This document shows positions 12,801 to 51,800 of a stretch of DNA of 64,000 nucleotides, piece after piece (the stretch's first letter is position 1; each line of letters opens with the position of its first letter). The notes under the pieces were generated by a model, which was not told the origin of the DNA, searched no databases, and worked only from the letters and a program-made list of their open reading frames with translations. The position numbers and the translations under genes were made by a program. The DNA comes from Botryllus schlosseri (Eukaryota), in contig CM119386.1 in NCBI GenBank assembly GCA_051294905.1, positions 10,478,001-10,542,000 of the forward strand, in the 5' to 3' direction.

Positions 12801-15800
12801 ATAAGAAAGTAAAAAGCAAGGACGTGGTGCAACATGGAATCAGTTGACTGATGGTGCTGCGGGCCGTGAGCGATTTGAAAGTTTGAATCTGGCCCACGAC
12901 GTACTTTGAGTTTGACATCCCTGGCAAAGGGTTTTTATTTTACTAGTGGCAGCCGGGGCAAGATTTCCGATGAGATAAAAAATTAGGGTATTGTGCGTTA
13001 CTCCTATTGTGCACCATATGTCAATCCATGTCGTGGATTTTTCATTTTCATGCATTGTGCCGACTGTACACAGAGATTTACTGGAAATGTGATGGCAATA
13101 TTGATACTGACAATGCTGATACTGCCGTTATTGGCGATTGGAGATTGCATCCCCCATACTGCTACCTGTTTGGGAGTCAGACCATGCAATGGGAGGAAGC
13201 TGAGGCAGAGTGTGTGAGGCTGGGCGGTCATCTCGCAAGCATTCATAATTCAGATCAACAGTCCTTCATTGCTGGTGAGTGGAGCGCACTTTCACAATTG
13301 CCTACGTGCTATATTCATCAACCTATTCCTTGTCATCGTGTGATAGTCTGGAGGCGACCACCACAGGTTTTACTTAGTTACATTTCTATTTCACAGCACA
13401 TTTATTGGGGCAGACTTGGATCGGTTTGAATGACAAACAACTAGAAGGAACTTATAAATGGACAGACAACACACCCTTTGTAAGTGGTTTATGTATTCGG
13501 GGTACTTAGATCTGAATACTGACTCCAGGGTTATTATCGAATGGACGAGTTGCGACTATCATAACTCTGGAACTAATCGGAACTTCAGAGAGTACAATTT
13601 CTTTACCTAAAATATGCTATATTATACTAAAAACAGACAAATGGTTACTTGATAATCCGCTAAATTACGACGATCATTTGGCTACTGGTAGCTGGTAACT
13701 AATGCAGAGTTCTTTTGTTGCGCAAGAATTTCTCTAACTGGCAACAAGGAGAGCCTAATAATGCCAGTCCTGATGAAAACTGTGTCCATTCGTGGGCTAA
13801 CGAGAATGCGGGATGGAATGACGAAGCTTGCACACGTGGCGACCGAACTTACGTGTGCAAAACCGATGCCGGTGCCTACTAACATACCTCATCATCTGTA
13901 GAGTCACCTGTTCTAATCATGTGTGCTGCATAATCCTGCATTATTGCATGCCATGGTAGCGTTCTTTGACTGACGTAGAGTAGAAATTAACTCGCTTTAA
14001 TTGGTCATGAATTGTAATTGATCGTTTGAAGCCTTCTGCGATCACCCACTACCTCACAAAAGTCACTGTATGAAATAATACTATATCTCTCCATTAAGTA
14101 CCAGTAATTGACTTGATAAGGAAGCCAAAAATGGGAGGAATCAATTGAAAAGCTGTTTTGAAGATATTACTAATCAGATTGCTTGGTTAGTCGTCTTTCA
14201 TATTTTTAGGGATGATATGAGTTTAGGGAGATAGTGTAATGGTGATGCCACCGGCTTCTTGATCAGTAGGTCGTGGGTTCGATCCCCGGCTGGGTCAGAC
14301 CAAAGACTCGAAAACTGGTGTCCGCGGCTATCCTGCTAGGCGCTCAGCAATCACGGATAGCATGGAGGAGAAAAATGGGGGTGCAGACCAGATGACCTTA
14401 CTATAAAGGCCGTATCATATCTCCGTCGTCAAAGCATCACGATGGTGCAGATGAAAAAGAATATCGTCTCTTTCTCTCACTCTCTCTCTCTTCATGTTCT
14501 CATTATCCAGCCAGCTTAAATAGTGAGTGGGTAACGGACTGGCTCTGACATGTAATATATACTGCTTTCTATCAATGTTAGTAAATATTCACCTCATATG
14601 TAAAATAGGAAATCATACATATTTCAAATTCTTTTTGGGATAAGTGTGTCTTAGGAGAGGACAAGACTGTCTGAAAGATTGGTGTAATGGCAATGGCATG
14701 AATAAATGCTTTCATGGCACTGAAACGAATTCAATATTGAATTATATGTCATTGTTCCACGAAAATGACCACATGTTAAGCTAATGTCTCTTCCGTGGAC
14801 AAGAAGAGCAAATAGATGCATATCAGGCATCACAGTAAATATGTAATATGGAAACGGATAATGCTGGTTAATCACAAACGCCGATCCCCGCGACACGTAC
14901 CTCGCATACTCGCATACTTTCCAGAACTTTACTAATTGGAAAGTCGCTAACGTGCCCCAGCCAGATCAGGACGGAGATTGTGTGCGGATCATTGGAGTTG
15001 ATACCGATAATGCGTGGGGCCAGTGGAACGATCGCCCTTGTTCAGAAACAATTCGATTCGCCTGCCAAAAGAACGCCGGTACTGGGCTGCACAGAAACAA
15101 TTCCGCAGCGTGTAGAATCCGCGTGCTTGATCCTGTGACATTAATACTTTAATCGAATTCCTTGAAATTTCAAATCAAGATAAATTAATTTTGCCTTTAT
15201 TGATCGGCCGACAATTGGAATTTGATGAAGAAATTGTAAAAAACAATTATGCTTGGTTGATTGTGACTTGTGAATATGGAATAACTAAATCAATATCCTT
15301 ATAGTGAATGAACTGATGCATATAACAGATTTTGTATGGTCATGGTCATGATCGTTCTCAGTGGGGCAGCTCGAAATATTTTTCACAATAGACGTCCAAT
15401 TTTGTTGTATTTCGAATCCATTACAGCATGAAACGTAGCCCCAAACTCCACATGACACCCACACACTGCACTCAGCATAACCATCTGGAACTTGCATGGT
15501 GTAATCAAATCTTGATTTCAATATCTTGCGGCTCATAACCGTATGCTGAACCTGAATTCTTTTTCAGTACATCTTGCCGAACCTCAGCCAGTGCCTACTC
15601 TACCACGTAAGTCATTTATCGTATATCAAATTAAATACAAGACCGATATACGTATCCGTAGAAATACAAGCATCAAACTACTCAGGTCGATATTTATAAA
15701 CCTTTCCAATGACGTCATCACTCCTGCAAATATTCCAAAGTGACAGATCCTTCGCTACTGCTGGATTGATTTATAAGGACATGGAGCTCACTTCTTGCTG

Positions 15801-24800: not shown

Positions 24801-27800
24801 AACTTATTCCTTCAGTTTGTCCAAGACAAACCAGCTGGTGTAATTATCTTGATCACTATAAGGTTTTTGATTCTTAACAGCTCCAAAACATCTCAATATT
24901 TGTAACTTTTATTCGTTTTTATTCTTCATAGATATCCTTAATCCATTTATCACTGCTTCCATCAGGGGACCACCTTGGATGTCCGAATGGCTGGCACGGT
25001 TGGCTTGACTGGTGCTACTACACCCCACGACACTCCAACAATTTGAACTGGGCGGATTCCAGGGCATTCTGTCAAACCCAGGGAGGTGATCTTGCCAGTA
25101 TTGGCAGTCAGGCGGAACAGGACTTTGTGTCAACCTTATTGTTCTATCAATGTGAGTTACGTTCGCATATCAACCGTAAAATGTATATAACTAATCAGCA
25201 TCACTCGTTTACGTTACATAGTTAGGCTTTTAATGAATATGAATTGGTGGGAATTGGGTATTAGTATGGCAGATTAATTTTAGTTATTGTTGGCCTATGC
25301 CTGGAATTCCTGTTCTCATGGCCGAGTCATGCAGATGAAGCTGATAGTTCACTGCGCTGGATTTCGGTGACCGATTCCATCCCTGGATTATGCTGTTCGT
25401 CCTCTTTAATCCCTGAAATAGTTAGATAGGACTTGGCATGTTTTGTTGTCATTAAAATGATTTTGAATATTCCTGCTCAGCCCTGCATGGGCTCCTTTTT
25501 TCCCCAAGCGACAAACTGCAACTGAAAACTTCACCAACTGACTTGCTTAGATACTATCAGTGAAGCTTGGATCGGAATGAGTGATCTCGAGGAGCAAAAT
25601 TACTACAAATGGTCTGATGGCACCGAAGTGACTTTCACTGCGTGGGACGTATATGAACCAAATGGGCAAGACGAAAGATGTGTAGAATTATATAAGGCAA
25701 CGTAAGTTATGTCTGCCGTATGCAACTGTAATATTCAGTCAAAGTTGAAATATTTTATCGTACCCAACTAAACACATGGATATCAGGGTATGGTGTGACC
25801 TTAATGTAATACGGACTTTTATCAATGTACATGGTGCTTTAAACTCATAGCTTCTGCATATTAGTGCAGTGACAGACTGGTGTTCAGCAACATATAATAG
25901 GTTTTTTATAACAGTGGACAGTCTGCAACATAGAAGAAAATAATAAACACAAATATGTAGCAAAGACGGTAGCCATGGTAACGTATGAAAACAATAAATA
26001 GATATATCATATATAAATTATCGGGTACAGACTCTCAGTTCTTATTGTAATATGCAAAAAGGATATCCAGGTATTGGCTCTTGAATTCGTGGTGAGGCAG
26101 TTTTTTGAAATTGTCGGGTACGCTATTCCAAATAATTGGGTCCACATATTCAATAGACTGTTGGGTGAGTCCAAAGTTCATGCGGTGAACATACAGATTT
26201 CCAGATTCTGATGATCTAGTAGAATATCCATGCACAGTACAAGATTGCTCAAACAAGGTATTAAAGTATGGGATATATTGCCGTTTGTAAATTTATGCAT
26301 CAGGTTTGCTACTTCGTAATTATACAAATCGGGTAGTTTAAGTATCCTAAGAGTTGAATAACCAGGAGTAGCAGATGACCTAGAATCTATGCCACATATA
26401 TTTCTTACGGCTCGATTTTGAATGAAACAGATTCTGTTTAAATCTGTTTGAGTCGTCATATACTTGTTTTAGTGCCTTTCTCACCACTTCCCTTGACCCA
26501 TTTGAACTTATTACCTCAAGCATGCCAGGCTATAAGCTAAATTGGGAACCCATTTCACGGTGCTACTGCACAATATTGTGCTTAACTAAAGCAATCTTCT
26601 ACTCATCTATTATGTGTTATTTCACGTTTCAGCGGTCGATGGAATGACCAACCTTGCTCGACTCTCGTAAACCTTGTGTGTAAGATGGATAAATATCCGG
26701 TAAATCAAGAACAGGAGGTTATCGAAGGATGCGAGACGGGCTGGATCGCTTTCGAAGGGTCTTGCTATTTCATCGATTTGACGAGAGTGGTTTGGATCAA
26801 CGCTGAAGATTATTGCAAGTAGGAGTTTGTCTGATAAATTGTGCGTCATCTTGTATTTTGGGTATTTTATCGCCTACATTCTCGTTTTCGCTTACTTAGA
26901 CAAAACGTCACAATAGTATGAGATAATAATAGAGAACTGGTGAACTGTTATCAAGGTTCGCATGTTGGTTTGCAATGGCTTTCGTCTGAACGCAATGGAA
27001 TCCGTCGTTCATGTCTTATCGAAGTGAATTTGTATGCAAACCTGACACAACAATTGTATTACCTCAACGTTTCAGCGACATTGCGCGATGTAGCTAGTTT
27101 TTGTGAGTCAAACCTTCATTTCATGGCTTGCCAGCTAGCTATTCCGTGGACATATGAGCTTGAACCCACTCACGAATGTGGGTTAAAGTTCGCTTCAGGG
27201 TTGGGTTTGGGCAGTGGTTCTCAACCGTGGTGCCGATTGCACTGCTGAGGGGTGCCATGAGAAAATGAGGTGAAGAGGTTTGGCGCCAAGATATTACAAG
27301 AATAAGGAAAATCTATTTATGTGTAGCATTTAGGAAGCTGATGACTACAACAGAGGTCCTCACTGGCAATGAGGCTGCAATATTGAAGGAGCAGTGCACT
27401 TTAAAAATGACATGGTCTCAAAAAAAATTTGAAGTGGGAATTTTTTTTGTCAATAGCCATTTTATCAGAAAATCGCTGTATTTTAAAATGTTTTCACAAG
27501 TGATCCGATTGTATTCCCTCAATCTTCATCATTGAGGTCACATGTCATTGCTTCTTAACTATTACGGTACCACAAGACCACCGTTGTTCATAAGACACAG
27601 TTCCTTCAAAAATATCAGCTGATATCTGTATCTGAAATCTCCTGCTTGATCACTTCTAAAACGTGCAAATGTGAGGTAATGTTTCATGACGTTTCACACC
27701 TTCAACTTGAATTTGAGGCCACAAGTATTTAGAGCAGGGGTGGGCAAACTACGGCCCGCGGGCCGCATGCGGCCCGCAACACCGTTCTGTGCGGCCCGCG

Positions 27801-30800
27801 AGAGTCTAAAGAAACTTATTGAAAATATTGATAAAATGCGTACTAAAAATCGATTAAACTTTCTACTTAGTATATCTCACTATGATAATTCTAAGACAGT
27901 GGTGCTCAAACCGAGAGGCGTGCCCCCTTGGAGGCGTGAAAGCATCTGAAGGGGGCGCTCTGCTCAGCCCAGCTGAAAAAATACACTTCGTAGTTATTCC
28001 TCTGTATTTAGTATGAATTTCATATTTGAAAATCTCTCATCCACAGTCGTAAATTTCCATGCCATCATACCATCAAACTATCCGTTAGGTTTGCTAGCAT
28101 CCTGATTGCGTCTTGTGATATGACAATATGGGGGACGTGAAATATTTCCCAATTATAAGGGGGGAGGGGGCGAATCTAAAAAAGTATGGGGACCACTGTT
28201 CTGAGGTAAATACTTCCTGTATATTATTTTCTATGTTTAATTTCTGGCCCACGCAGTCTCAAAGGTTTCAACTGCTCAACATCAAAGAAATCCTATTGAC
28301 ATGATTCGGATCACGAGTGGGATTTCAGATTGGCCACTCCAGTTTTAATTATTTTAATGATGTGCATATAAAACACGATTGACGCGCCTCTTAGGTAGAT
28401 CCGTTCTCTGTATTGTCTGTAGAATTGAGATATTTATATTTTATCTACACATAGTAAAAGTGTGTTTGAAGCTAACATGGTCATGATGCTGTCAGCATTG
28501 TGTGTCCTGGAATGAACCAAAAGTGGAATTAGTAAATCTATGAACAGATCGCTGCTCGCGGATTTAAATTTCAATCCTGGTCTAAGAATCGGGACAACCA
28601 ACTTTCATCACTATAGTTTTGACAAATGGGTTACTGAGGCCGACCAGCCTATGAAATCTCGCCGTTATGTTTCTGACGCGTGTACGATATCACCAAAAAA
28701 TGTTTGGTTTGTTTCAAATAAGCACATATATTGTCTCCAAATCCAAATTTTATATAGTGCGGCCCGCGAATGGATTTAGATGTTGAATGCGGCCCGCGAG
28801 CTCAAAAGTTTGCCCACCCCTGATTTAGAGCGAAGCGCCTCTATTATACTTGGTCTAAAGTAATGACATTCAGTCACCACTATCATAATCTGTGGTAGAA
28901 TGCAGGCTGATGACCATTTTCAGTCATCATATTCCTGAATCTTGCATTCAGTGTGCCTGTAGTGTTAGGGTGCTGCCAACCATTTTCCCCTGACAGAGGA
29001 TGCCGCGAGGTTAACAAGGAACCGCTCGGTGTACAAGGAACTATTCCGTTTTAGAAATGTTAATTTTGTGGTTATGATTACGCTTGGGAGAAGTTTTGTG
29101 TTTATAAAGTCACCTGCTGAAGTTTGAATATCGTTTTGCATTGGGTTGCTTGCTGAAATGCCAGTCGATCACACCATTGAATTTTCCGATTAATGATTTG
29201 GTATTGTATGGAGTATTTGCAAACATGAGCAAGGCAACCCCTTCGAAACAAATTTTATGGAAAACTTTCTTCTGTATGCCCTTGCCATATATATGCTTCT
29301 GATGTCTTTGGTCATTTTTACAGGGGAGTCGGTGGTCACCTGGCCGCAATCAACACGATCTACGAGCAGATGTTTTTACTGAGTCAAATTGCGGAAGCCA
29401 CCCACTCTTCGGACGACGAGAAATTCTGGATCGGACTCGGGGCTTACATCAACCCCAACAGCGACGCACTGGACTACAAGTGGTCTACCGGCGAACCTGT
29501 TACGTTTACGGCATGGGATCAAAATCAGCCGAGTGAGACATTCTCTATAGCTGGCTGAAGAACGTGGCTGATAATGGTGGTATTAAAATCTCTTTTCACA
29601 GACATCCAACACACTTGCTCATTCCCTTTCCTTTACAACGGAATCGAATATTACAGTTGCATTGAAGAAGGAAGAATTTATGATCGATTTGGTAGGTTAT
29701 GTGACAGCTTCGGTTTTACTAATGCTTTGTATGTTGCAGTAATTCCATATAGGGACTGTCGTCGTAGCGAGTCAATCAAGGTAGAAGGTGTCGAAGCATA
29801 CAACTGTCACTATCCATCCCTAACCTATCCAGACCACTCTTTTAACTATACCCTTAACTAACCCTAATCACAATCTAACTTCTAGTCTTGTGGTTTTCAA
29901 ACTATTTTGTCTCATAACCCCTTATCAAGCTCAATATTTTTTACCCTAGAATTAACGTTGTCTCCAAGGAGTGAAGTCAGCCACTTTTAGATCCTCAGCA
30001 GTCTATGCTAATGAAACCTATTCTGGATGCCTCGCTATTATTATACTCTCTATTTTGACACTGTGCTAATGGGAATGACTCATTATTTTGGACCAATCGA
30101 TATTGTCAGAGTGTTTACAGGCTTTTACGGCTGTTGCAATTATATGCATTGCTGGCCAAAGTCTAAGTCGCCGAATTAGAGCTAATTTGAGTAGTCCGCT
30201 TCCGTACGCATAGAATAGACCGCATCTAGCTTTTCTCATTCAAAACTGCCTTGTGACAGGACCTTGGTGCTCCGCCGAACCCGTCTTCAACAACCATTTT
30301 GTCTTGTGCAACGGATGGTCCGACAGTCAAGTAGGTTGTTTCAGAATGGACAGTGTCACAGGACTGTGGTCGCAAGGGCAGCCAGTTGCCTGTGGATCTG
30401 ATGCTTACAAGTATGTGTGTGAATTCTTTCGTACCCGGGTCATTTTAATTTGCAAATCAAGATTAAAATTCTTCAGGCTTCCGACTGTTTTTCGCTAGTT
30501 TGATTAATCTGCCCGGATTAGAATAATATAATCCCAATCAGACATGGGGTAATCGCGATTAGTAATCGTAATCGATTACGACGATTACAGCATTTTCAAG
30601 TAATCGTAATCGCAATCGATTACATTCGGAAAAATTCCGAAGTAATCGTAATCGACTACTTCCCATTTCTGATCGATTTCTTTGTGAAAGAACGATTACT
30701 TTTATTTGTACAAGGAATATGACATAAACTGAACATTCGTGAGCAAGGAAGATGTATTATACAAGGTTCAAACGTCTGATTTTTAAATGTCATTGCTCAT

Positions 30801-33800
30801 TATTATGTTAGAAGTAGCCTATTAGCTTTGCTAGTCATTGTGTAAGAAGTATCCACTGTAAATAGATATTCTATGTACGTGACGTACATTCGTGTGATTG
30901 TAAGAACACCCGCTGGCTGTATATCAGGTTATCAACACGTTCCACACGCCAGTACCCCGCAGCAGGATAATTAATCACCACTCTACCTAGTAACTTGTGT
31001 ATTGATGTTTGGTTATGCAAACGCAGTTTGACCGTTGCTGCTTGGCGAGCAGTAGGCCTATGTAGTACGAACGTACACCGGACAGAGATTTGAAATTTTG
31101 TACTCGTTAAATAAAACATTACGGTTTCCACAACGACGCAATATAAATCAACAGCTGCTGATATATATCATAACCGAACCGTTTTTGCCGTTTCTCGTAG
31201 CGGCAGCTTGCAGTACATTATCTATATTAAGTTGAAGGAAGAATTTTATGTTCTGCTCATATGACTCTACTTGAAACATGCGCCAATCGCTATTTCATAA
31301 TTCTTTACTCAACATTGGGACCTGCCGCCATAGCCATGGGCTTATATATCATGTTAGCGTGAGTTGTAGCTAGAATCAGGACCAAAACAGCTATTCGTCC
31401 CCCAGTCCAAACGTTGGTCTTTGGCCCCATAGGGTGATAATTTCAAGTTGAAGACTGAATTTCGTCAATAATATTGGTAATCGCATTACATTATTATTAA
31501 TTTTTAATCCTCGGTCTCTCTCTCTGCCACCGATGGTCAGATTTACCTGTAGAGCTGGGGGCACGTAATTCATAATTATAACGTATTTTATCTTGTTATA
31601 ATAACTTAGTGTATGTTGGTAATTCGTGACTTCCGGTCTGTTATATAATCAAAAGATATTGTTGTATCCCTAACGTAGCAGACTAAAAGAAAAGCTTTCG
31701 TGAGACGCACACACAAATTATCATGTCTTTAATGCTCTGTGGGTGTCCGGGTGGCATTTGCATTGTTGGCTCGGATTGGAAGGACCGGACCATTAGTCAC
31801 GCCCACCCAGCGCGGCTATTGACAATGGACACATACCCCAAGTTTCGGCCAAGGTCTTTCTTTAGTAGCACACTTCGTGAAGTCGAGTGTTGGTCGAAAT
31901 TGCATATGTCTTTTGGTGTGTCGAGGCACGGTATTGACTGGAACCTATATGCCTATTGCTATAAATTAGGGTTGCATTTAAAACAAAAATAGGGTGGCGT
32001 GATAGCGCAGTGGTATAATCCGCGGCTGCAACACCAATGGGTGCGGGTTCGAGTCCGACCGAGGTTGACTTCCGAATTCCGACACCTAAGTGTTGGAGGT
32101 TTACCTAGGCTCCTCCTCGCTACCTCATCCGCGTCAGCGGTGTCTTACAAAAAGCCTAGAAGTGGGCCGTGCTCTAAGTCGGCAGTTACGGAAAATAAGA
32201 ATAATATCGGCCTGGTGTAAATGACCATAGTAGTCGACAAACACCATGAATACCCCAAAACAAACAAACAAAACAAAACTAAATTTAAAGCGACCATGTT
32301 TACAACAAGGCCCTTGTTTAAAACATGTTTTTTTTTTTTAAGCCATGACGTCACGAATGTGGATTGACATTGACAATTGAAAATATAGGGTAAATATAGC
32401 TCCTTTGACAAAATATCTGTACTATAACTGTTGAACCGACTATTTTGAGGGGTTCCAACCATCCCATATCGATGTACGTCGGCTAAATCGGGTGGTAATT
32501 GTGGAAAACATTTACACAATTATGGCATAATTTTACAACTTTAAAAAAGTTTTTGTTTTTAAGCCTTTGTTTAAAACACTGTTTAAAACATGTTTTAAAC
32601 AATATGTTTTAAACAACCATTTGTTTTAAATACAAGCCTACTGTAAATTATGTATGCTTTTTTTGTTGAGGGGGAGAGGTATGCATTTCAAAATCAAGCT
32701 TATCTAGAGAGGATTTCCAATTTAATTAAATCTCTCGAGAATACTCTATAATTTATGTTGGTTTACGAAATACTCTTGAGTCCCCTTCGAGCTCGCTCCC
32801 CACCCTATTGGGAAATTTGGGGTGCGGCAGTCATGGACCTGGCAAGAATGCAAATTGTTGGGTGCGATAAATCGTCCTGTATAAAAAGAGGCAATGGGTA
32901 TATGATGACGTAACAAGCAAATGACGCATCTTTTTTAAAGGAAGTTTGTTATCTCATTAGGCCTTTTCAGCGCAATCCAAATATTGTCTTCCAACATAAC
33001 TTCTAAAATGCAAAATAAATGTAATCGTGAGTAATCGTGATTACTTTTCCAATGTAATCGTAATCGACTACTTCCTGATTTTGCGGTAATCGTAATCGCG
33101 TCATTCTGAAGTAATCGTAATCGCAATCGATTACATTCATGAAGTAATCACCCCATGTCTGATCCCAATCCGTCTTTTCAATGGTGCTATGTAATAAAGG
33201 TTGTTGGAATTTTTTATGTCTCATTATTATCTGCATCTTCCAAAATCGGTAATGATATTTGTTCGGTGTGGAGGTTGATTATGTTGTTGCGATCATGACC
33301 ATCGAAAACTTGAAGTGTAAGGCCTGCTCTCTTAATATTTAAGCTGCTTTGCAGTTATTCACAAGTAATGAATGAACGGACGCTTTTTCTATAATCATCT
33401 ACCGAGCTTAATCTTTTCGAAAGGATTTGCGAAAAGCCCCGTGTCGGCTACACGAATGCCCCGCTACCTACAACAGCCTCGCCGAATGGCGACTGTCCGT
33501 ATGGTTGGGACGGAGAGACGAAGTCAAGCTATTGCTATCAGGTACATACGCTATTTCTCAAAGGCAGTAAAGTAATTAACTGACTCGGACTCGACCCTTT
33601 GCTCGCTGACTTGGACTCGGACTTGAATCGGTAGTGAATTGAAAATGAATCGACTGGACTCGAGTCAAAACTATAAAATTATGGCTAACACCACGTCGTA
33701 ATTTTCGTTATAGATTAACGAAGTGCCTGCTACCTCTCGGCTCAGTTGGGCCGACGCTGACATATACTGCAAATCGCAAGGCGCAGAATTAGCAAGCATG

Positions 33801-45800: not shown

Positions 45801-48800
45801 AGTTTTCAAGTAGACTTTATCTACTCAATTGGTTATGTTTTCTGGCAACTTCCATCTCTGCTTCGACAGTTTTTGGAGACGAACATATTACTTTCTCACA
45901 TTTGCGAATTTGTAGAAATTAGCGTTTGGGCAGATTTGTACCGATTTTAGGAATGACACTGTCTTGAAAACCATGCACTTTTACCCCTACACCGTGGAGG
46001 CAGGAGTTGATTCTGAAAATAGCATCTGTTTGTGGCGCCATCAGTCATTCCGCATATTTAGTCATTCCGCATCTTGCTATTTGATAGCCATTGCTTGCGA
46101 CTGACTAATGCAAGCACGCCCACGTACATGTTCAAGATACTTTCGAGACATTAAAATTTCTCGCAAATGCAAAATCCTGTACAGGATATAGATATTTAAC
46201 TGTATATCTGCTTCGCAAGTACAAACCGGTTGAATTAGGAAAATATCGAATGCAAAATTATTTCCAACAGAGTATAACCAGCGGACAGACCCAGTTCATG
46301 TGGATCGACGGTTCCGCCATGTATTTCACAAACTGGGCAACAAACCAACCGCAGGACACCTCGACAAGTACCGGATGTGGCGAAATGACAGTAGACGGCA
46401 CCTGGTCGTTGGAGGACAGCAATCATTGCAACACAAAACATTCTTTTGTATGCAAATACGAAGAATGTGAGATTGCGCCTTTTTCGCCTAGCTACTACTA
46501 GCTATCATCACTTACTATTATCGTTTCACGTCTTATGTTACAGACGTGTTTCCGACTCAAAGCCCAGGATTAGGCTTGTGCGACCCTGATTGGTTCGGCT
46601 TCGGAGACTACTGTTACTACGTAAAACCAGGTACGGTGGCTTATCATGTATGCCCAATGCCCTGTCATTATAATTTACTCAAAAACGATATATATATATA
46701 TTTGCGGATGATTTTTGTGCCGGCGGAACTATGAGACACTATCGCAATTAGATCTGTACCAAAAACTTCATTTTTGACTTTGAAACTAAATATGTTACGA
46801 TATTCGAAGTCCGAGAACTGAATGATGGACATTAGACATGCACAGTACACACTGCACAAGAAAATACGTATATTACCACAGTCAGTTTTAAATAAGCGAC
46901 GGATCCCATTGATCACACATACAGACAGCACAGTGGTCAACATAAGCGACTTACGTTCTTACGGCGACAGAAAAGCCCAGAAAAAGACCCCATGAAAGAG
47001 CGCACTGACAAGGAATGGAAAGAGCAACACAAAGCCGCAAAATAGAGACAAACATAGAAGAAAAAACTGTGATATCGGACACTAGGTGGATGTCAGTTTA
47101 AGAGACCGTGACTGGTTGTTCGGCATCCTACATTCTGTTCATTACGTCGCATTGTGTCTTATCGCATAGTACATTGTGTGTGTCTTGTTCAGACAAAAAT
47201 ATATTCTGACGATCATTATGATACATAGATTGATGCAGTGATAACTGATAAGCACTTCCCAAATTTGTTAATGTGCACAGCATCTTCTGTGACGATTAAT
47301 GAAATTTCGTGGAATGGAAATTGCTACAAAAAGGATATGCGAAATGTGTGTCTGCGGTGACATATGTCTGTCTTAGAGAGAAAGAGAGAGAGTCTTTATT
47401 TTCATCCAACCAAAATAAATAACAAATAGACGGCAATGATGGTGGTACAGAAAAAATGCATGCACACTTGCACAGTATTCAGTATCGGATAGGAATGATC
47501 GATACGACTGTGAAGGTCAACTAGTCTGATTACACACTGTTACTTCTTTAAGGCACTGGTAATCTTCATCTCTGTCATCAGTCACTTCACATTAGTGTCG
47601 CACAAGCATCTTGCAAATTCAAATGCAGCCATCTCCGATCTCTGACCTAATCTTCTTTTTGAAACTACCGGTACTTAATTCTGTAGTTTCAGACCTTTGA
47701 TTTTTTTACATCCACTTGTAGTATTGACGTCGCTGCGACGTTGACCACCTCTGCCTGTTTATGTGACAATGGAAATTGATTTTTAATTTTCTTCTGTAAG
47801 GCACCGCCATATCATGGGGAGACGCCGAGTCTACTTGCAACACCAGAGGAGGCTACCTAGTAAGCGTTCATTCCGATTTGGAAAATAAAGCCATCGATAG
47901 CTGGGCCGGCAGTCAAACCGTCTGGCTCGGACTGAAGAGAAACGCTTGGGGTATCATTTTTTGCGAAATAATCGGTACCTGTTCGAATGTGCCAATTTTT
48001 GATATCTACAGGCGGATGGGCTTGGAGCGATACTAGCGCGTTGGATTTCACGAACTGGAAAGCGGGTGAACCGAACGATTATGGCGAAACCGGTGAACAG
48101 TGCGCCGAGATGTACAAAGACGGGGTTTGGAATGATGTTGTCTGCACGAACGCAAGAGGATATATTTGCAAGAAGCATAAATGTAATCCGATATACAATT
48201 GACTATTCATATTTTCAGTTGACATTGGTCAGGGGTATAATCGTCCTCAACTATTTGAGACTTTAAAAAAACTTTGTATATCAACAGTCGTATTTCAACT
48301 TGAATATATTTTTCAATTGTACATTGAGGTTGTACCTCCACTAGTCTGTTCGGAATGTGAGATTTAATTCCTAATTCTAGACTGATTTCGTTTCCTGCCA
48401 AAAGCTTAGTCTGTATCTGGGTAATGACTGAAATTCTATTGAAATGTCATACAAAAGTTGTAAATTGATAGAAATTCCACATGTCAGATTCGAGTTGATT
48501 TCATGTTTTCCAAACCAAAATCGGTTACGGATTAGAGACTCGAATTCAAATCCTAAATTCATTTTGTATCCTGTCGAAAGCCTATCTGTAACAGGGTAAT
48601 GACTGGAATATTTTTCTAAAGTCCCATGAAAATTGTAAATTGTTTGAAATTCCATGTAAAAATCTGATTCCAGCAGGAAATAAATCATGCATCCAAATAT
48701 GATTCTCTTCCGGCCGACATCCTCAAATCAATTCCAAATCCCTGCTCATATCTGCCTGACATCAAACCTTGATAACTGCAATTGTGGTTTATCCGATTTT

Positions 48801-51800
48801 CCTGGATTCGGGACCGATGTTTATTCGTTACATCTCTGCGATTGCTGAAATGAAATCTTTCTCACTGTCTCGTTCTAATCTGCGTTGTCATAACTAAAGT
48901 ATTATATTACAGCGTATGCATCCTGCGCTTTCCCGTCGGCAGAACGTGTCGATTGCGGATACGCGGGAATCAACGAATACGAATGTTTGGAGCGGTTGTG
49001 CTGCTGGGATACGACAGACACGGCGTCCACCACTTGTTACTATTCGCGAGGTACCTTGTCCACAGCGTATCTGGTGAACCGAAAGGTTATAACGGATACT
49101 TTTGCGTAGACGACGCGCAGTGCTTGGAGAAAGGCGGCCAGTGTAAGGACTACATGCACAATACCTGCGAGCTGGGATTCGAACAGGGGCTGTGCAGCGG
49201 CGGCACTGCTAATCAGTGCTGTTTCGCTTGCGATGAAAACGACGACACGTGTAAGTGTTTTGATTGCCGATCCGCATGTGTGTTGAAGTTTGAGTGTGAT
49301 TGCGATTGGTTAAAATGATGATGAACTGATAACCGGTTTAATATAATGGGAAGCTGGTCACTAATCTCTATGTGCGCAGTAATAGCAATTATGCAATTAT
49401 GAACCTCAACCTCCATCTATCAAGGCTTTAGCAACGTATATGGGTCTTTTGGAACGATTTCTATCTATATTCAATTGAAGTAGTCATACATGAAACTCTA
49501 CGTCTCGCGAAACACAGATTACAATCTATAAACACTACTGGTCACTCTTTTAGTTTTCCTGGAAGGAGAAATTATCATCCTTTTGATTCCTATGCACCCG
49601 ACACATCGATCTTCAATCTTCATATTGATGGCCAGACACCAACTTTACGTTATAGTAGGTTGCGCTGTGAAATAACGCTTCGACTGATGTGACACTTTAT
49701 TTGCCGGATTCGCATTCCTCAAATTTTTTCTTTTTCATTAAAGAATTTCCTAAATGAGCCGTCGATAGCATCAAATTAATTGGCATTCTAGTAGGGCTGG
49801 GCAAAATCGAGTACCCTAGTGATTTGATTCTGAATCACGTATTATGCTTCGAGTTGAGTATTCGAATATCATTTATTATGATGTCATAACATATTGTAAT
49901 ATGTCAGATTTCAAATATGTACCCGGTATGCTGCCACAAAGAATATAATGCCTGTTATAGATCGCATTGAAGATACTTTGGTATTTGTTCGACCACACCG
50001 ATTTCATTGCACTTTGTGACAATGTTGTGGGATGAACATGACTTCGCAAATTTGTCATTTCCGTAACGTTCGTAGCTTTGTACTGTATGTTTCGTATGCT
50101 GCGATATAGCCAATCAAGGTTTATAGGCTTCCACAAACGAAATAGTGTTGAAACTATAATTCTCGTTGATAAATTAACTCGAATCATTGTGCCCGGCCTA
50201 CATTCTAGTAATAGTCATTGGTATTTTTATTTTCATATCCGCTACCCATAGAGAATAGGCAAACGACAGCTAGGTTGGGAACCCCAGACTTGAACCACCT
50301 CTAGATACTAGTGCCCAATAACTATCTATCAATTTTCAGTATCGACGAAATACTGAATTGTATGTTTTGTACTTGCTAAGCTTCGACACCGTAGCCTAGT
50401 ACAACATGAATGGTAGCATGAAGCTTTCTACCTGTAGGTAACGAACAAGTCGACGGTTGGGAAGATGGTGACGATGCATGCGAAAAGGACCCGAGCATAT
50501 CAGGAAAGTGCCAGTATAATTCAAACTACTGCAGCGGGACGTATCTGAGTGGAAAGTGCGGAGGACCGGCCCAACGCCAATGCTGCGCGAGTACGACATT
50601 GAACCGTGATAACCCGCTGTGGTACTATATGCGTTGTTTTCAGGCGACTACGTACCGCCCACCGATCCGCCCAGGACCACTGTGACCCCGTCCACTGACA
50701 AGACCGTGACGGTCACCCCGCAAACGACAACGACAAAAAGAACGACGGATTTTGCGCGCACTGAAGAAATCCCGGCGGCCGCCGGTATGTAACTCGCTTG
50801 GTTCATAAATACATTAGTAATGTTCAGCTCAGTTCATCATCATCATCATTGGTTTATCAGCAATTTTTATCAGTTCAATACACCACAAAAATGCGATACA
50901 ATGAAAAGATAGGAAGGTGTCGAAGCGACTTGAAGTAGTCTATGGAATCAGACACCCACCTTGGCCTAGGCGATGTAAAGAGGAGGCATGCATACTGAAT
51001 GGAAAGTAAAGAAGATAGTGTAGAAAAAGAAAGCGACAAAAAATGGGGCGGCATGTCATGGAAAGCGAGATCGATAGGCCAGTCGTGGTCCTGTAATCTT
51101 GAGGATGGACTAGTATTTATTTAGTAGTAATTGCTTGTATTTCGACTTGAATGTGGACATGCTCGTCGGATGGCTGGTGGTATACTGTTCCACACATCGG
51201 GTCCGGCATATTTGATAGAGCGATGATCTTTTTGGACGACGTGGACGCGCGTGTGTTGCACTTGTGCGCTTTTGATTCCGAGGTAAAGAAGTCATTGAAA
51301 TATTCGGGGCAACGACCGCAGTGGAGCTGTCAAAGGTGGTCTGCAACGAAGGACTTCTACTTTTAGGGAGTACTAGTATAGGTTTTGCTTACTTACACTG
51401 CTAACTTGAGTTGTTATAATCAGGGTTGTAATGACTCGACTGGACTCCGGTCATTTTTTCAAATGCGTAAAATGACTCGACTTTTTGTATTGACTCGACT
51501 TGTACTCGAGTCATTGTGCATGCCTCGAACCAATTCGTATGACTCGAGACTAGGACGGCCAAGACAGACATTTCATTGTAACTTCGAAGAATAGTAAGTC
51601 ACCAAATTATTGGTATTTCGTCTGTCAGTCCTGATACTTGGAAAATAGGGCCAGAAACTGTTGAGACTGAAGGAAATTTCAATACTAGGAATGCGAGCCA
51701 TTTTTTCAATTTTTTTTTCAAAAAAATGATTTTTTTTTCATATGTTACTCCTTGCTGGGCTAGAAAAAATCCTGTCCGGTGCATTAGATCTATTTTAATC

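Follow-up and report, generated by a model that had tools for sequence, protein, structure and literature searches.

A complete fibronectin type II (FN2) module was found inside the seventh C-type lectin domain (CTLD7) of a long, multi-domain gene. Because a diverged species keeps the same exon layout, the nesting is confirmed, at the level of sequence comparison, as a real domain-within-a-domain design. This architecture is very probably what the mRNA encodes. The explanation that we favour as a whole is likely, if less firmly so: the FN2 would be a constitutive part of CTLD7, and CTLD7 would serve as a scaffold presenting it at the former sugar site.

Exon organization of the gene

The window (the whole stretch of DNA that was analysed, 64 kb) carries an intron-rich animal gene on its + strand; its G+C content is 40% and it contains no N. 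About 12 CTLDs, an approximate count, are chained in this gene between ~2.6 and 48.2 kb. The last of them is followed by a trefoil (P-type) domain at 48894-49106 (Pfam Trefoil, 44.3 bits, E = 1.6e-11). The product is probably a membrane-anchored receptor consisting of the ~12 CTLDs and the trefoil domain.

CTLD7 is read from five exons that splice into one open frame; their acceptors are AG, with pyrimidine-rich tracts, and their donors are GT. The exon-end phases are, in order, 2, 1, 1, 2 and 0. Exon 0 (26633..26818, + strand, bounded by AG and GT, end phase 2) encodes the last part of CTLD6 (GRWNDQPC...VCK) and, after a linker, the first part of CTLD7 (CETGW...GSCYF...AEDYC). The alpha helices of CTLD7 are encoded by exon A (29324..29532, + strand), which ends in phase 1 within the codon for the N of a QPN motif. 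This third residue of the motif straddles the junction of exons A and B (29530-29604), where A is joined to AC to give N. Exon B (29602..29691, + strand; 90 nt, phase 1-1) contains the linker IQHT and the first half of the FN2, with Cys1 at 29616-29618, Cys2 and the stretch ...GRIYDRF. The second half of the FN2, from PWC (Cys3) to Cys4 at 30307-30309, is encoded by the first part of exon C (30260..30309, + strand). The remainder of exon C (30310..30410, + strand) encodes the return linker NGWSDSQVG and strands beta-3 and beta-4 of CTLD7 (GCFRMD, GLWSQ, VAC), and ends in phase 2 at the donor GTATGT at 30411. Exon D (33424..33541, + strand, acceptor AG at 33422-33423) supplies the last strand of CTLD7 (K/ICEK), a linker and the start of CTLD8 (CPYGW...).

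The introns between the five exons measure, in order, 2.5 kb, 69 nt, 568 nt and 3.0 kb. The spliced product reads CETGW...FWIGL...N-IQHT, then the FN2, then ...GLWSQ...VAC...AYK/ICEK. From CETGW to ICEK, CTLD7 has a length of about 178 residues. The exon positions given in an earlier, sequence-only reading of this DNA (a start at 29324, and exons at 29602-29691 and 30260-30410) were found to be exact, with AG acceptors, GT donors and an open spliced frame. The intron between exons C and D also contains clusters of GTAATCGTAATCG-type sub-repeats at 30555-30663 and 33015-33151, which are ~2.4-2.5 kb apart and partly inverted. These clusters resemble two copies of a MITE or the termini of a DNA transposon.

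The FN2 module

The spliced module of 51 residues matches the Pfam fn2 profile (PF00040) with 38.4 bits (E = 1.2e-9), well above the gathering cut-off of 22.2, which bears out the claim of the sequence-only reading that a complete four-cysteine FN2 is present. Exon B by itself scores 31.6 bits, and the module of a relative described below scores 38.0 bits. In both species the profile is covered over positions 1-35 of 42, and the last seven positions (36-42) are unmatched. All four cysteines are conserved in the window and in the relative. In the window, 13 residues lie between Cys1 and Cys2, 13 between Cys2 and Cys3 and 12 between Cys3 and Cys4; the relative has 13, 14 and 12. About 13 residues separate Cys1 and Cys2 in canonical FN2s. 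The Cys3-Cys4 segment is two residues shorter here than in MMP-2 or fibronectin.

The aromatic residues of the FN2 ligand pocket are reportedly known from work on MMP-2 and PDC-109. Aromatic residues kept in both species are FPFLY, the Trp before Cys3 and an F/Y after Cys3. The aromatic-Gly-aromatic positions before Cys4 are not conserved and read HFVL in the window and HPVN in the relative. Among solved structures, the best matches to the module are FN2s of MMP-2, MMP-9, fibronectin and PDC-109; LY75 matches far more weakly. No second FN2 motif was found in the 64-kb window besides the one in CTLD7.

The interrupted lectin domain

Exon A matches Lectin_C (PF00059) over positions 16-74 of 107 with 30.4 bits (cut-off 22.6). 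When the FN2 is excised, so that the tail of exon A is followed directly by the remainder of exon C and the start of exon D, the match extends over positions 55-107 of 107 (18.3 bits, E = 0.004). A profile search giving a Lectin_C split around fn2 had been anticipated, and the segments 16-74 and 55-107 do flank the FN2; these halves were scored as two separate parts and not as one spliced domain. The cysteines C0 and C0' (CETGW...GSCY), C1 (DYC), C2 (GCFRMD), C3 (VAC) and C4 (ICEK) are all present, as is the FWIGL motif. The strands that the sequence-only reading had labelled C3-W-C4 are therefore there, and their labels have to be shifted: the cysteine of GCFRMD is C2, that of VAC is C3, and C4 lies in exon D.

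Two lectin-like stretches in the introns were considered and rejected. Read-through from exon C into the intron (30411-30426, GTATGTGTGTGAATTC) yields YVCEF, which mimics the last strand of a CTLD; that strand is really encoded 3 kb downstream (33424). As an exon end it was ruled out by the donor GTATGT at 30411 and by the downstream exon with K/ICEK. The splice positions are also conserved in the relative, whose own read-through is YAVVAV, without VCE. The mimic may be due to chance or may be a relic of an older exon end. In the intron between exons B and C, a stop-free stretch at 30059-30163 (HCANG...WTNRYC) resembles beta-3 and beta-4 of a CTLD. A stop codon directly precedes it and an acceptor is missing, so the resemblance is probably due to chance.

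To place the insertion, spliced CTLD7 was aligned with MAFFT with the C halves of seven sister CTLDs of the same gene, each read from one exon. The elements NW, (E/Q)PN, the beta-3 Cys, W, C3 and [FIV]C[EK] align in CTLD7 and all seven sisters. It is precisely the segment from QPN to the beta-3 Cys, 6-10 residues long in the sisters, that is extended in CTLD7, by ~48 residues. The insert is thus in the long-loop region between the EPN-equivalent and the beta-3 Cys, in agreement with the earlier placement of the FN2 at the calcium- and sugar-binding loop. It is joined to its host by linkers of 4 residues on the way in and about 9 on the way out.

The EPN/QPD, acidic and WND residues have an established calcium and sugar role in mannose-binding protein and its relatives. 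A full set of these site-2 residues (EPN or QPD, an acidic residue before the beta-3 Cys, and WND) is present in five of the seven sisters, the acidic residue being two or three positions before the Cys. Site-2 ligands of CTLD7 are missing in both species: the motifs are QPN in the window and QPD in the relative, with WSQ in place of WND. Before the beta-3 Cys, CTLD7 reads DSQVGC, with no acidic residue at -2/-3, and none is present there in the relative either. Since canonical site-2 residues of established role are lost, classical sugar binding by CTLD7 is, judging from these residues, very unlikely. It had been proposed that the ligand loop of this CTLD was converted into a display site for FN2. 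Of this proposal, the nesting, the replacement of the loop and the loss of sugar-site ligands were upheld by the alignment with the sisters and with the relative.

Two sister domains show peculiarities of their own. The CTLD at 46109-46498 is also non-canonical, with QPQ for EPN and WSLEDSNHC for WND..C; as in CTLD7, the part after the Trp is three residues longer. CTLD4 has two alternative C-half exons (13703-13879 and 14862-15149, with EPN...WND and QPD...WND, respectively), both of which align well with the other CTLDs.

Conservation in other species

Exon C was searched exhaustively with phmmer against 1.84 billion representatives. One true match, P0002, was obtained (54% identity); it comes from prokaryote-style gene calling on a contig of eukaryotic origin (ctg13047l, ENA ERZ21736675). 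Nine of the other matches were scanned with Pfam (P0001, P0003-P0005, P0007-P0010 and P0017). Their domains are those usual in bacterial proteins (beta-propeller, Ig-like or type IX secretion), without Lectin_C or fn2, and they were discarded. Besides P0002, no other protein with the composite exon C was found in the 1.84-billion library, where P0002 and these nine matches were looked at.

The contig of the relative was walked over ~58 kb (record positions ~36.6-95.9 kb, pieces L001-L007) and carries the complete orthologous unit, with order and orientation unchanged. The same nested layout was therefore recovered on ERZ21736675 ctg13047l by the ortholog survey that had been suggested with the sequence-only reading. 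The five exons have ends and phases identical to those of the window, exon B' is again 90 nt long and the spliced frame is open. Exon 0 is 50% identical to its orthologous exon. Exon A' matches Lectin_C over positions 15-71 and is 53% identical to exon A, with the same ends; exon B' is 66% identical. The third residue of the QPD motif is also split by the A'/B' junction (L007, reverse strand), G and AT being joined to give D. Exon D' reads ICEIPREGY...

The introns of the relative measure 1.3 kb (0'-A'), 7.6 kb (A'-B'), 49.2 kb (B'-C') and 0.4 kb (C'-D'). The 69-nt and 568-nt introns of the window thus correspond to introns of 7.6 kb and 49.2 kb. These enlarged introns hold reverse-transcriptase, endonuclease and DUF659 ORFs. 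Within the B'-C' intron, L002-L005 (~47 kb) contain only retroelements; exon B' is in L006, and exons A' and 0' are in L007.

Amino-acid identity between the window and the relative is 52.5% in the N part of CTLD7, 66.7% in the FN2 and 52.6% in the C part of CTLD7. Synonymous divergence is saturated (pS 0.75-0.83), with pN at 0.27-0.31. By these measures the FN2 is constrained at least as strongly as its host CTLD, because its identity is 66.7% against ~52.5% at saturated synonymous divergence and pN of 0.27-0.31. On the same sequence measures, the nested arrangement is under purifying selection in a diverged species.

A third species is represented by the Logan protein P0024, which is 86% identical in exon A. 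Its reading continues across a short intron that is not conserved and enters, in a shifted frame, a sequence resembling exon B. The codons that could underlie this part fit the FN2 residues of the window at 25 of 28 positions, whereas other offsets give 2-8, and both cysteine positions are among the compatible ones; exon B of P0024 is inferred here solely by codon compatibility in the shifted frame. Protein searches with the stop-free stretches around exons A, B and C gave no transcript-derived protein of the species and one genomic fragment (P0024, with the stretch around exon A), long proteins being outside the length range of these searches.

Proposed role of the nested module and alternative explanations

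We propose that CTLD7 no longer binds sugar via calcium and would act as a rigid scaffold displaying the FN2 at the former sugar site. The FN2 would bind a protein ligand through what is retained of its aromatic face (FPFLY, the Trp of PWC and the F/Y after Cys3), and collagen-like chains are the obvious candidate ligand. The neighbouring CTLDs with canonical EPN/QPD motifs would bind glycans. The first and last cysteines of an FN2 would be close in the fold, by analogy with kringles. Because of this closeness and of the linkers of 4 and about 9 residues, insertion of an FN2 into a surface loop is plausible by that analogy.

It could be argued that the FN2 exons are confined to a minor or alternative isoform, and that the main mRNA makes a plain CTLD7 via an alternative exon or acceptor. 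Exon B is symmetric (90 nt, phase 1-1), so that its skipping in frame is possible; however, skipping of exon B alone would produce half an FN2 with unpaired cysteines, and any removal of FN2 sequence by exon skipping would leave half a module behind. Within exon C, an AG noted by eye ahead of TAGGTTGT would keep the frame. As a way to bypass the FN2 it was rejected as weak, since it has no pyrimidine tract and the resulting loop would be shorter than that of any sister CTLD. An alternative CTLD-type exon was searched for in the intron intervals 29533-29601, 29692-30259 and 30411-33423, and none was found. Purifying selection on both halves of the FN2 is at least as strong as on the CTLD, which also speaks against a minor isoform, and we consider this explanation improbable. 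Still far less credible is an artefact, be it intronic sequence that resembles an FN2 by chance or a pseudogene in decay. The gene model was built from sequence only, which leaves some room for such a reading, but the Pfam fn2 E-value of 1.2e-9 is difficult to reconcile with it. The relative retains all four cysteines together with the exon ends and phases despite saturated synonymous divergence, and the introns are unconserved, with 100-fold differences in length, while the exons are conserved.

The remaining alternative accepts the nesting and concerns the ligand. The FN2 would not be a collagen or gelatin binder but a spacer, a contact for a neighbouring CTLD or the site of a different ligand, such as a choline-type head group. 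Mannose-receptor-family proteins adopt compact forms with contacts between neighbouring CTLDs. In both species the last third of the FN2 deviates from the family profile (positions 36-42 unmatched), the residues before Cys4 vary between the two (HFVL versus HPVN), and the strongly conserved N-terminal half would suit a structural role as well as binding. A mere spacer, on the other hand, would not need the FN2 to be the most conserved segment of the domain, and FPFLY, the Trp before Cys3 and the aromatic residue after Cys3 are kept in both species. Taken as a whole, this alternative is rather unlikely, yet it deserves attention. Collagen or gelatin as the FN2 ligand, a possibility raised in the sequence-only reading, is itself doubtful, perhaps slightly more so, and a different protein ligand or a structural role for the FN2 is rated at a similar level. 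Classical gelatin binding may have been lost, because the aromatic-Gly-aromatic positions read HFVL/HPVN.

Novelty and significance

The literature on FN2 with CTLDs, ascidians, nested domains and long-loop insertions was searched, and no description of an FN2 nested in a CTLD was found. No paper was found on the sample accessions of the two relatives (ENA ERZ21736675 and SRA SRR25569784). The design is apparently undescribed. As a tentative idea, possible though short of an even chance, the FN2 would have been recruited to a multi-CTLD receptor in a non-vertebrate chordate, independently of the vertebrate mannose-receptor family. It would be the first folded domain nested in the ligand loop of a CTLD, and the FN2 and the remnant of the CTLD would form a composite site for a matrix or microbial protein.

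The CTLD is a classic example of a single fold that has acquired many ligand specificities through remodelling of its long-loop region. In the literature searched, no report of the replacement of the CTLD long loop by a whole module was found. If transcripts and a structure confirm the arrangement, it would be a natural example of loop grafting on a CTLD scaffold, of use to protein engineers. An FN2 serving as an inserted module would then be known from a second case, after the gelatinases. The arrangement would also be a convergent pairing of an FN2 with a chain of CTLDs in the sister group of vertebrates, with a bearing on the origin of the mannose-receptor family.

Comparison with known systems

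Like canonical calcium-dependent CTLDs (mannose-binding protein and the sister CTLDs), CTLD7 is a long-form six-cysteine domain with FWIGL, W...C and ICE. It differs from them in that the loop from EPN to beta-3 is replaced by an FN2 of ~55 residues plus linkers.

The mannose receptor family (MRC1, MRC2/Endo180, PLA2R1, LY75/DEC-205 and avian FcRY) also combines a chain of CTLDs with a single FN2, and several of its CTLDs do not bind sugar. In that family the FN2 stands on its own, after the N-terminal ricin-type domain and before CTLD1, whereas here it lies inside CTLD7. The statement of the sequence-only reading that the vertebrate FN2 is N-terminal to CTLD1 is consistent with the position of the LY75 FN2 at residues ~139-196. 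Upstream of CTLD1 (2581-2760), the open segments of the window gave no Pfam ricin or fn2 match; the 5' end of the gene may lie outside the window. The trefoil domain after the CTLDs is a further difference. On its domain content, the gene is read as a multi-CTLD receptor of the mannose-receptor kind, yet not as a member of the family, because neither a ricin-type domain nor a free-standing FN2 was seen ahead of CTLD1 and a trefoil domain is present in the tail.

In the gelatinases MMP-2 and MMP-9, FN2 modules are likewise inserted in another folded domain, beside its active or binding site. Their host is the catalytic domain of a zinc protease and carries three FN2s in tandem, whereas the host here is a CTLD with one FN2. 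The FN2s of MMP-2 and MMP-9 have a full consensus C-terminal part, and their gelatin binding is established. The gelatinases are a partial precedent for the nested FN2 of CTLD7.
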